From NCBI GenBank assembly GCA_023334545.1, contig JAADVB010000045.1:1-64000 (forward strand): 64,000 nucleotides of DNA. The letters run 5' to 3'. Below, one piece after another: positions 23,549-26,026 of this stretch (within the stretch, counting starts at the first letter, position 1; every line of letters starts with the position of its first letter). Source of the stretch: Salisapilia sapeloensis CBS 127946. Lineage: Eukaryota; Protista; Oomycota. A program made the translations under genes and the position numbers. The notes beneath the pieces are model-generated. The model saw nothing but the letters and a program-made list of their open reading frames with translations. It had not been told where the DNA came from and did not search any database.

Positions 23549-26026
23549 ATGAAAAGCCTTCTTTACTTTTTCGTTGCCGCTGCTATCGTGGATGGTGCAA
23601 AGGCACAAGCTCTCGAGTGCGGTCAGACAGTGGAAAGTCAAGTGACAATTGACCGATGGGAGCAGCAGAGCGCACTTACGTTGTCCAGAGACTGTATTTT
23701 ACATTGCAACTCTCACAATCGAATAGTTGACTCATGGAATTTGCTAGCTCATACGGCAGCCGTGTTTCAAGATTCCATCTACCTTGTTGGTGGAGTCTCT
23801 TCCCCATACTATACCAAACGACTAGAATACACGAATACCAGGTCCGATGTTGTATCTTCCAAAGACGGAGTGGACTGGGTCGAAGTTCTGGAGGAGGCCC
23901 CATTTCGAAGGCGATATGGTCACTCGCTCACAACCTTGAAAGATACCAGCGATGGCGAGGAGCGCCTCGTTCTTGCTGGAGGCTTCAGCCCTCTTCCTGC
24001 ATCAGACATTTGGACCACAGTAGATGGAGGTACATTCGTCTTCGTGTACTACAATATTAAAGTGTAACGAAAGAAACAGAGAATTGGGTGGAAAGTAGTG
24101 CGAATGTGCCGTGGACTGGCCGAGGTTACCACTGTGCTGTAGTCTTTGACGAAAAATATTGGATCCTTGGCGGAAGCCCATTCAACAATGAAGTATGGTC
24201 CACTTCTTCAATCATGCAAGGTTACCTTCTCAACTTGTCTATTATTGATGACAGCTATTGATACAGCCTAGGTGACTGGAAACGACATGATGACGCAAAG
24301 TGGAGTCCTCGTGCTGCTCATGGATGTGCCGCCCATAAAGTCATGATGAACTCGACTCTCGGAGATACATCCTTGACCGAATTTCTATATGTGACTGGCG
24401 GCTGGGACGGCACTTCTCTCCAAGACGTCTGGCGAATGGACAAAGCCGGAGAGTGGCAACGCATCGTTGAAGCTGCACCATGGAGCAAACGAGCGTGGCA
24501 CTCTTTAGTCTCATTCGACTCTCGCACCATGGCGGATGTACAGTATGGACCTCGTCTCTGGCTCATTGGTGGCGGTATCGTTGGCAATGGCATTGACCTC
24601 ATGCAGTCCTATTCCGACGCATGGTTTACATGGGATGGCATTCACTGGGAGAGCGCGACATCCGATGCATCCGGCGTGTCCACTGCAGAGTGGAGTATGG
24701 TCAGCGTGAATACGGAAGAAGTATGTGTAGGCAAGTGGGGTCACGCGGTGGTGTCATTCCATCAGCGAGTGCCCATTGCCTTCTATTGTGATGATTCATG
24801 CTCGAACGAAGAGAATACAGTTGGACTCGGTGGTCAACTTATTCCTGTGTGTGATCCGAAGAATTCGCTACCACAAGATCCGATGCTTCAAACGATTATC
24901 AAGGACAATAGTATCCGAACGGTGACACTCTACCCAGACGGATGTGGCCTTTGCTCCGGACCACGATACTACAATACAACGTACATCCCATCACTCTTTC
25001 TCATCGCTGGGAATGCTGGGGCACAAAAAGTGAACGATGTATTTGCAAATGCTGCTGGGAGTATACATTTCCGATTCTATAGTCGCTCGTACGACGGTTA
25101 CTTACGTCGATCTAGTGTTGTGCGAGAAGAATGGAGCGATTTGTGGTAATCAAGGCGTATGTACCCTTGGAGGGACATGCCTATGCAATACAGGAAAGAC
25201 TGGTCCATACTGCGAAGACGAGGCGGATTTCGTCATCGTGAACACGAGTATGTAATCTCCTTGTCCTTCGCACGGTATCTCATGTTGACGATTGTGTCCT
25301 ACAGCTAGCTGTTTTCCGGACTATGCAACCGTATATGATACATACGGCCAGGCGCTAAAGATTGGCGATGTGAAAGTTGGCGATAAGATCTTGGGAGTAA
25401 ATAAGCTTGGTGCGATCGTTCCGACGACCGTATACTATTTGCCCCATGAAGATCAGACGATCCTGCCAAAGCTTGACTACCTACGCATTACCCACATGCG
25501 TTTCGATAGTACAAAGGTATATTATTGACTCTCTACACTCTATCCACGGTCGGCACTGACACTTCGTGTGCACGTATAGCAAGAAATACTGGACATAACG
25601 CCGGAGCACTTAGTATACGTTGTGCAAGATGTCTCATTGAAGACAGTCGGTGCATTCACCCAAAAAGCAGCACGGGAGATCCATCCCGGCGATCTTTTGC
25701 TTGTCACATCCACAACGTCAAGCAGTATGCGACTTTCGCCGTCGCAAGTGCTTTCAATAGACAACGTCCGCCTCTCGAAGACGAAACCGACGACAGTGTA
25801 CACGACAACGGGCACGATGCTCGTCGAAAGCGTCTTGTGTAGTAACTTTGGCGACTTTTACCCAATGATCAACCAGTGGCGCGACGGTGTGCCATTCTAC
25901 TTGTTTGGACTGCACCGATTCACTTATGGTCTCCTACCGTATGGTGTCACAGCACGGATCTACAGTGCGCTTACAAAATCTTTGATACCAATTGTCAGAC
26001 GAATCGGGGAAGTGCTCACGAATTGA
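23549..26026 (+). CDS. Secreted Kelch-repeat/EGF protein with C-terminal Hedgehog-type Hint (Hog) autoprocessing domain
   Basis: Signal peptide MKSLLYFFVAAAIVDGAKA; Kelch repeats (APFRRRYGH, VPWTGRGYH, AKWSPRAAH, APWSKRAWH with GG dipeptides); EGF CEKNGAICGNQGVCTLGGTCLCNTGKTGPYCE; Hint S|CFP (Cys 25310), GDVKVGDKIL, LDITPEHLVYV, GTMLVESVLCSNF; helical tail. Confidence 0.9.

Follow-up and report, generated by a model that had tools for sequence, protein, structure and literature searches.

The gene described here, from the oomycete Salisapilia sapeloensis, probably encodes a secreted Kelch-EGF protein that ends in a complete, ordinary Hog domain of the protist type with N-terminal autoprocessing activity, as judged from profile comparisons and the structural model of a homologue. 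It lies in a 64,000-nucleotide stretch of DNA that was analysed as a whole and is called the window below. A preliminary description had read the domain as a hybrid of Hog and intein or BIL chemistry on account of two residues, a His where Hedgehog (Hh) has Asp46 and an Asn where Hedgehog has Cys143 and inteins have their terminal Asn. Throughout the oomycete family, His46 together with Asn143 is what is normally found.

Results

Gene model and domain organization

The predicted order of domains is a signal peptide, a Kelch propeller, an EGF-like domain and a Hog domain composed of Hint and a helical tail (Table 1). The gene is collinear with the Pythium insidiosum protein P0001 in tblastn, the Kelch part sharing 54–65% identity with Pythium insidiosum and P0007, and the Kelch-Hog gene order also occurs in Pythium and in a metagenomic eukaryote contig. 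Exon 1 is based on the open reading frame list and weak Kelch Pfam matches, with 54% tblastn identity to P0001 residues 7–137, and exon 3 aligns with residues 134–448 at 56% identity; its open reading frame 24343–25149 gives Kelch_1 and Kelch_3 matches that stay under the Pfam cut-offs. The EGF-like domain of exon 4 matches Pfam EGF_2 (PF07974) with 23.5 bits (cut-off 22.1). Splice sites were read by eye for exon 1 (GT donor at 24030) and exon 2 (acceptor AG at 24078–24079, donor GT at 24221–24222), while the exon 3 donor at 25061 was picked by eye to restore the frame. Among the sequencing runs searched, the sole matching one yielded four 151-base contigs of a relative that is 92–98% identical; all four lie within the Kelch part, so that none covers the Hint exons, and none bears on the splicing of the predicted gene. 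No second Hog copy in the window was indicated by tblastn.

The preliminary description gave the range 25310–25849 of the forward strand. The residues in this range are as it stated, but the frame is interrupted by a predicted intron; homology resumes on both flanks, and the two stop codons appear in frame in the translation. On account of this intron, counting from Cys1 along the spliced protein makes the Asn residue 158 and not residue 143; the label Asn143 used here denotes the equivalent of Hedgehog residue 143 by alignment.

Table 1. Features of the Kelch-EGF-Hog gene (positions in the window)
Feature	Position	Strand	Content
Whole gene	23549–26026	+	
Exon 1	23549–24029	+	Start codon, signal-peptide-like N-terminus MKSLLYFFVAAAIVDGAKA (judged by eye), first Kelch repeats
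Exon 2	24080–24220	+	Kelch repeat; collinear with P0001 and P0007
Exon 3	24272–25060	+	Rest of Kelch propeller and Cys-rich linker; 3' end approximate
Exon 4	25116–25247	+	EGF-like domain CEKNGAICGNQGVCTLGGTCLCNTGKTGPYCE; 5' end approximate; GTATGT donor at 25248
Exon 5	25305–25516	+	T-S linker, scissile bond Ser|Cys1, N-terminal half of Hint
Cys1	25310–25312	+	tgt, directly after T-S
Residue 46 from Cys1	25445–25447	+	His, cat
Residue 47	25448–25450	+	Glu
Intron in Hint	25517–25579	+	63 nt, GT..AG, in frame, two stop codons
Exon 6, part 1	25580–25846	+	C-terminal half of Hint, TPEH motif, last strand SVLCSN
TPEH (TXXH)	25598–25609	+	Thr 25598–25600, His 25607–25609
End of last strand	25838–25846	+	Cys 25838–25840, Ser 25841–25843, Asn (aac) 25844–25846
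Exon 6, part 2	25847–26026	+	Phe+1 (ttt, 25847–25849), F-G-D-F-Y-P segment, 58-residue SRR/ARR-like tail; stop codon 26024–26026

Membership in the Hog domain

When the two Hint exons were scored separately against the Pfam Hint profile (PF01079), exon A scored 22.6 bits over profile positions 13–62 and exon B 32.8 bits, above the cut-off of 29.7, over positions 77–161. In phmmer the C-terminal half of Hint aligns to the Drosophila Hh-C structures 1AT0 and 6TYY. The profile of the oomycete family matches Hh-C structures with E values from 4.5e-16 to 2.6e-14, and 6TYY and 1AT0 are the best of these (4.5e-16 and 2.2e-15). An exhaustive search recovered this oomycete family; word matching of the 148 aa of exon B against proteins of 81–259 aa had missed it and gave no match.

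Of the residues used in catalysis, Cys1 and the TXXH motif are in place. The −1 residue is Ser and not Gly, and neither of the features of Hedgehog proper, Asp46 and Cys143, is present. The +1 nucleophile (Cys, Ser or Thr), which BIL-type cleavage does not require, is also absent, being replaced by a Phe that, as the preliminary description had rightly argued, cannot support splicing. The penultimate residue before the Asn is Ser rather than His, as in 26/26 members of the oomycete family. By hand comparison with intein motifs, the place of intein block F would fall in Y-T-T-T-G, which contains no His.

Structure of the Pythium homologue and the position of the Asn

The protein folded was the Pythium homologue, which is 36% identical to the window protein (AlphaFold model, pLDDT 80.5). 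VIA-align superimposes the model on 6TYY, the D46H variant of Drosophila Hh-C and its best match, with a Z score of 20.3 and an rmsd of 1.6 Å for 146/146 residues, and on the wild-type 1AT0 with a Z score of 20.0 and an rmsd of 1.6 Å over the whole chain (145–146 residues). Inteins reach Z scores of 13–17.7 and BIL domains no more than 15.5 (C. thermocellum 14.7, Tetrahymena BIL2 15.5). As modelled, the HINT fold of the Pythium homologue resembles Hedgehog C-terminal domains more closely than it does any of the inteins or BIL domains compared. The assignment to a Hint/Hog domain in the preliminary description is thus borne out by Pfam Hint matches on both exons and by the fold of the homologue.

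In the superposition, model residues 1–174 pair with Hh 258–403, which places the family Asn (model residue 171) on Hh C400, that is, C143. The same model residue pairs with the last residue, in the intein's own numbering, of many inteins, among them Mtu RecA (440), Mxe GyrA (198), Ssp DnaE (159) and Npu DnaE (137); these VIA-align pairings of the Asn were derived from the two ends of each aligned range and not residue by residue. The model therefore supports the earlier placement of the Asn of SVLCSN|F at the position of Hedgehog C143 and of the terminal Asn of many inteins.

His46 as the counterpart of Hedgehog Asp46

G24-D25, G34 and V41 lie at the same distances from Cys1 as in Hedgehog. 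An hhalign comparison with a large protist Hog family (probability 99.3%) sets His46 against a His that is invariant in that family, and profile comparison shows that this invariant His occupies the Hh D46 column. Such alignments support His46 as the natural counterpart of Hedgehog Asp46, in agreement with the preliminary description. HMMER against wild-type Hh prefers to equate D/E47 with D46 by opening a gap of one residue, at a low posterior probability. We read this pairing as a probable alignment artefact and set it aside because Cys1 and V41 are equally far apart in both families and because the His persists in the protist family with no acidic residue beside it. Identity to 6TYY and to 1AT0 is 26 versus 25% in Foldseek and 27 versus 28% in VIA-align, values that are rounded and come from different alignments; they favour neither His46 nor Glu47. 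D46H Hedgehog is fully active, and a review bears out the literature on this swap as the preliminary description stated it, with sterolysis kept and substrate tolerance broadened.

Conservation in the oomycete family and in other protist Hogs

Lineages of the oomycete family share just 33–47% identity with the Pythium Hog. Among members that cover the respective sites, Cys1 is kept in 8/8, both named residues of TXXH (Thr and His) in 22/22 and His46 in 11/11, the last within the motif YY[ILVM]PH[DE] (11/11). Residue 143 is Asn in 24/26 and Ser in 2/26, and the Cys two residues before it is invariant (26/26), a place taken by Ala in the broad protist family.

For a wider comparison we used 120 other protist Hogs from a large marine-protist family (P0029–P0149). 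These were chosen by similarity to His-bearing queries, so the residue frequencies that follow describe the sample and not all Hogs. The D46 column is His in 117/117 scorable non-Hedgehog members; residue 143 is Ser in 61, Asn in 45, Cys in 6 and Thr in 5. His46 and Asn143 occur together in 45/120, and the tree of this family requires at least 12 switches between Asn and Ser at residue 143. Since His is found in 117/117 and Cys in only 6/120, Asp46 and Cys143 mark animal Hedgehog and not Hogs at large. Published alignments also print ASNY for Trichinella Hh and zebrafish Dhh, which are bona fide Hedgehogs. A string "CSNF" in the Burglin supplement was rejected as a relative, as it belongs to an unrelated Tetrahymena VWA-Vint protein.

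The oomycete Hog family occurs in Phytophthora and Pythium too. One paper describes Phytophthora and Pythium as being without Hedgehog-related genes, and in one paper Hog genes are called absent from oomycetes. Both genera are sterol auxotrophs that make no sterols.

The tail after the Asn

The 58-residue tail is conserved in every member of the oomycete family that covers it. Near-invariant positions after the Asn are F, D, Y, D, F, H, R, P, T and P, and Phe+1 is invariant (26/26). Helices are predicted at residues 186–229 in the model of the Pythium homologue. The alignment of the family HMM extends into helix 1 of the Shh SRR, the family HR standing opposite Shh FR, and structural matching in Atlas aligns model residues 498–742 with Hedgehog. 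The SRR part of the Pfam profile has no match, exon B ending at profile position 161 of 213.

Discussion

As an ordinary Hog, the domain would work as follows. Cys1, aided by TPEH, would form a thioester from the peptide bond Ser|Cys1. This thioester would then be attacked, with His46 as the general base, by a nucleophile that the tail holds in place and that may be a sterol, another lipid or water, and the Kelch-EGF part would be set free, possibly bearing a lipid. At the C143 place non-animal Hogs use small polar residues interchangeably (Ser, Asn, Thr, Cys), and the Asn here is one of these; it most likely serves for positioning or hydrogen bonding and not for cyclisation. In human Sonic hedgehog both C143A and C143D abolish processing, and a Hog with Asn here must therefore work differently from Hedgehog, or slower.

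The same two mutations could also mean that the Hog is dead. Without Asp46, Cys143 and Gly-1, three Hedgehog hallmark residues that all differ here, there would be no autoprocessing, and the domain would be a merely structural or membrane-anchoring C-terminal module. We give this reading the least credence of all. D46H Hedgehog is fully active, and the retention of Cys1, TXXH and His46 among lineages that have otherwise diverged so far fits selection on catalysis. Hardly more probable is the proposal that the Hog cuts at both ends, releasing the Kelch-EGF part through the Cys1 thioester and His46 and then shedding the 58-residue tail by Asn cyclisation. It draws on the end points of the structural alignment, which put the Asn at the intein terminal-Asn place, on the conservation of this Asn in all but two members of the oomycete family, and on the likeness of the C-S-N end to the A-S-N end of the Npu DnaE intein. 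The Npu DnaE intein works without a penultimate His and, to go by the title of a structure paper, the Ssp DnaE intein reportedly does not need one either. Against the proposal, the window Hog has no penultimate His, and by our hand comparison with intein motifs the block-F His is missing as well. Ser cannot cyclise; as it replaces Asn in two oomycete members and swaps with it repeatedly in the sister protist family, Asn cyclisation is not a shared function at residue 143. An ASN end is also found in bona fide Hedgehogs, and Hh-C is structurally closer than any intein or BIL domain. Finally, the near-invariant Phe+1, F.D.YP segment and SRR-like tail suggest a functional portion of the enzyme and not a discarded extein, and cutting the tail off would remove a part that Hedgehog needs for adduct transfer. 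Cleavage at the C-terminus by Asn cyclisation, as put forward in the preliminary description, is not supported in view of the Ser swaps, the lack of a helper His and the conserved tail.

Somewhat likelier than cutting at both ends, though still improbable, is that the Cys two residues before the Asn takes over the role of C143 as the site of the branched thioester, as the displaced Cys of class 3 inteins does. A branched intermediate on C143 has been reported for Hedgehog. The relocated Cys is invariant in the oomycete family (L-C-S-N versus Hedgehog A-S-C) where the broad protist family has Ala, and in the model it lies on a predicted strand (167–170) together with the residue before the Asn, positions i and i+2 of a strand facing the same side. 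Against this, Ala at this place with Ser or Asn at 143 suffices in the large protist family, which means that a second Cys is no general requirement, and the Cys might have a structural role or be part of a disulfide instead. An ordinary protist-type Hog is the probable reading.

Taken by itself, the gene proves for the most part less remarkable than had been proposed. Its two unusual residues are standard in the family and do not make a singular hybrid; with both common in protist Hogs, the window Hog is the typical protist version and not a rare cross with an intein, and the co-occurrence of His46 and the terminal Asn, which the preliminary description proposed to survey, is no rarity. In recent papers Asp46 and Cys143 are described as both conserved and essential; the non-animal Hogs sampled here, in contrast, universally have His46 and seldom Cys143. 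Natural "D46H" Hogs with Ser or Asn at 143 are common and can therefore be used to test how general the branched intermediate is and which adducts His-type Hogs form. The presence of the family in Phytophthora and Pythium, which are without sterols of their own, raises the question of what, if anything, gets attached. By analogy with engineered D46H the domain may accept unusual sterols; use in bioconjugation is speculative.

Among known systems, Drosophila Hh-C (1AT0, and 6TYY with D46H) is matched in Cys1, GD.VL, TXXH, the last strand G-T-x-x-V-x-S-V-x-x-S and a helical tail after Hint. With 6TYY the domain also shares the His at 46, which is natural here and engineered there. Unlike Drosophila Hh, the cargo is Kelch and EGF and not a Hedge domain, Ser-1 replaces Gly-1, Asn replaces C143 with a Cys two residues earlier, and the loops are longer.

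The protist Hogs offer a closer parallel. Burglin 2008 (PMC2362128) described protist Hogs in which the motif-J Cys is replaced by Ser, Thr or Asp, and like these and the P0029–P0149 Hogs the window protein has a secreted N-terminal part followed by a Hog with the motif-J Cys replaced. The P0029–P0149 Hogs share the His in the D46 column and have Ser or Asn at 143. The oomycete family differs from them in its C-S-N-F end (A-S-[SN]-Y in theirs), in a hairpin before the His that is four residues longer, in the acidic residue right after the His, in its Kelch-EGF cargo and in its tail; several P0029–P0149 Hogs have a hydrophobic C-terminal continuation or a trypsin domain as fusion partner.

With the Npu and Ssp DnaE inteins and with bacterial and ciliate BIL domains, the window Hog has in common the HINT fold, Cys1, TXXH and an Asn that ends the last strand. 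It is unlike them in the invariant Phe+1, the absence of a penultimate His and of any insertion in a host protein, and the conserved SRR-like tail after the Asn, and its family is nearer to Hedgehog in sequence and structure. GIN1 of Glomeromycota, an AIG1 GTPase-Hog described by Burglin (PMC2362128), is likewise a non-animal protein in which an unrelated N-terminal domain is fused to a bona fide Hog, and its Atlas structural match has a TM score of 0.65 over residues 498–733; unlike the window protein, GIN1 has no signal peptide and carries a GTPase as its cargo.

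Gene structure and domain organization

Reading 25310–25849 in frame gives CFPDYATVY...VYYLPHEDQ..., two stops and ...ITPEHLVYV...TGTMLVESVLCSNF. Since the segment around the stops starts with GT, ends with AG and preserves the frame, we took it to be an intron separating two Hint-coding pieces, exon A and exon B. Its modelled length (63 nt) and that of a second intron at 24221–24271 (51 nt) are multiples of three, and tblastn therefore passes through both, which can be missed when only the frame is followed. No RNA support for the splice sites was found in public sequencing runs. 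Four 151-base contigs from one such run match positions 23799–25055, in the Kelch part only; they are 92–98% identical, so an organism closely related to the source has been sampled elsewhere.

Features of the Hog gene, with residues numbered from Cys1, the first Hint/Hog residue
Feature	Position	Strand	Remark
Predicted gene	23549–26026	+	about 730 residues; splice model drawn by hand
Signal-peptide-like start	23549	+	judged by eye
Putative intron, GTATGT...CAG	25248–25304	+	links ...VNT to T-S-Cys1
Cys1	25310–25312	+	sequence
His46, codon cat	25445–25447	+	sequence
Putative intron, 63 nt, GT...AG	25517–25579	+	both in-frame stops inside; frame kept
Asn, codon aac	25844–25846	+	sequence
Phe (+1 after Asn), codon ttt	25847–25849	+	sequence

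Kelch repeats and then an EGF_2 domain lie upstream of the Hog domain on the same strand. The whole gene is collinear with Pythium insidiosum GLD91495.1 (749 aa; P0001 among the relatives recovered by our searches), and the Kelch cargo (23582–25050) is closer to the Pythium protein, with 54–56% identity in the propeller, than is the EGF-Hog part (25109–26005; 36%). The opposite pattern of cargo and Hog conservation was described for haptophyte Hog proteins (Burglin 2008, PMC2362128). The exons were used separately in searches: against Pfam Hint (PF01079; cut-off 29.7) exon A scored 22.6 bits over profile positions 13–62 and exon B 32.8 bits over positions 77–161. For structure prediction the Pythium homologue stood in.

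An oomycete Hog family

An exhaustive HMMER search of 1.84 billion representatives with exon B yielded 19 true relatives (E values 1e-19 to 1e-6), and a profile word search added six. All named members are oomycetes, and Kelch-EGF-Hog proteins are present in Pythium insidiosum, Phytophthora nicotianae (P0004) and P. kernoviae (P0010); the Kelch-then-Hint order recurs in one metagenomic member. Hedgehog-related genes were stated to be absent from oomycetes (PMC8530017, 2021), a claim that this family contradicts. The deposited P. nicotianae model, KUF97778.1 (594 aa, source name 'Ubiquitin-conjugating enzyme E2 2'), looks chimeric: a membrane-protein-like N-terminus is fused to the Kelch end and Hog, and the EGF is skipped.

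Counting the window sequence, His46 is followed by Asp or Glu in 11/11 members and TXXH is present in 22/22. The last strand reads [VA][LV]-C-S-N-F in 24 and -C-S-S-F in two, such that Cys at -2, Ser at -1 and Phe at +1 of the Asn position are invariant. Among the best-conserved parts of the protein are the stretch that follows the Asn, F-x-[DN]-x-Y with Pro next in most cases, and a tail of ~50 residues, RD..PF.LF..HR..F.L.P...TA..LR..MD..LP.LR.

Positions of His46 and the terminal Asn

The family profile matched Hedgehog C-domains with E values of 4.5e-16 (6TYY, the Drosophila D46H mutant), 7e-16 (7E2I, human Shh) and 2e-15 (1AT0, wild type). From Cys1 through G24-D25-x-V-L, G34 and V41 the spacing is identical in the family and Hedgehog. 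HMMER matched the two His46 residues when the family was aligned to 6TYY; with wild-type Hedgehog the pairing slipped by one residue and put Asp/Glu47 on Asp46, at low posterior probability. The tie was broken by hhalign (probability 99.3%), which pairs the oomycete His with the invariant His of a large sister protist family (P0029–P0149), a residue usually lacking an acidic neighbor that shares its column with Asp46 of a Hedgehog-type sequence (F-G-H versus F-M-D). These sequence comparisons point to His46 as the counterpart of Asp46, as the preliminary description had proposed.

The Asn is residue 158 of the predicted spliced protein and corresponds to Hedgehog residue 143 by alignment only. 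The Pythium Hog domain, modelled with AlphaFold (pLDDT 80.5), was superposed on 6TYY (Z 20.3) and 1AT0 (Z 20.0) with an rmsd of 1.6 Å over every chain residue. Model residues 1–174 pair with Hedgehog 258–403, which places the family Asn (model 171) on C400, that is C143; residue 171 also ends many intein alignments at the last intein residue (RecA 440, GyrA 198, Ssp DnaE 159, Npu DnaE 137). These pairings, read from the residues at which each alignment starts and stops, bear out the proposed equivalence of the Asn with C143 and the intein terminal Asn. Functionally, C143 has been equated with the intein +1 Cys, not the terminal Asn (Faris et al. 2025, PMC12054796).

His46 and Asn143 in other protist Hogs

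A search with a profile built from three more distant Hog proteins returned 266 relatives. The best 120 of these, mostly marine metagenome with one MMETSP entry (organism name starting 'Thala...'), were aligned to one model. The D46 column is His in 117/117 scorable non-Hedgehog sequences, and the C143 column (120 non-Hedgehog sequences) holds Ser in 61, Asn in 45, Cys in 6, Thr in 5, Val in 2 and Gly in 1. His and Asn occur together in 45, so the rarity implied by the preliminary description does not hold, although a sample biased to relatives of His-bearing queries shows that the pair is common and not its true frequency among all Hogs. On a FastTree of sister-family domains built without the residue-143 column, that residue underwent at least 24 changes of state, of which at least 12 exchanged Asn and Ser.

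Fusions to trypsin (PF00089) or additional matches to Hint_2 (PF13403) occur in several sister-family members, and the three sequences read (P0029, P0030, P0032) carry a hydrophobic, membrane-anchor-like C-terminal tail. Replacement of the motif-J Cys by Ser, Thr or Asp was reported in mosses, red algae and other protists (Burglin 2008, PMC2362128). In the alignments supplementing that study the motif is given as ASNY in Trichinella Hh and zebrafish Dhh, and as ASSY in a pufferfish Hh and in Monosiga hoglet; the printed Hedgehogs contrast with the description of C143 as highly conserved and essential (PMC12054796).

Proposed mechanism

With the first-step residues, Cys1 and the Thr and His of TXXH, intact and conserved, the domain would most likely form a thioester at Ser|Cys1. 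His46 is plausibly the general base, as the D46H form of Hedgehog works both in vitro and in cells (PMC12054796 and a review). The tail is helical in the Pythium model (186–229), has SRR helix 1 of Shh as its counterpart in the profile alignment and lies within the Atlas structural match to Hedgehog. Its probable role is to present the attacking nucleophile. Phytophthora and Pythium, both with family members, are sterol auxotrophs.

The position of the Asn had suggested intein-like cyclization that cuts before the tail. We regard this as very improbable: two oomycete members carry Ser in place of the Asn and the sister family shows this replacement many times over, Ser is also the penultimate residue, and cutting there would remove a tail that is strongly conserved and looks functional. 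In a hand comparison with intein motifs, Thr instead of His falls at block F. The invariant Cys at -2 is particular to the oomycete family, other Hogs having Ala; that it is a relocated second catalytic Cys seems unlikely, and it could be structural.

Comparison with known systems

Of the earlier interpretation the residue equivalences stand, and the hybrid Hog/intein chemistry is not supported. No discussion of a His46/non-Cys143 Hog variant was found in the literature surveyed, and recent Hedgehog papers (including PMC12054796) still present Asp46 and Cys143 as conserved residues; the family-level pattern could supply Hedgehog biochemists with natural test cases. The window gene is ordinary for its family. 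Its Hog domain shows the Pfam score, Hedgehog-like fold (in the Pythium model), Cys1 and TXXH of a Hog, the tail being less certain. It lacks both Asp46 and Cys143 of animal Hedgehog proper and, apart from the terminal-Asn position, most defining features of inteins and BIL domains, and is best filed as a protist-type Hog variant.
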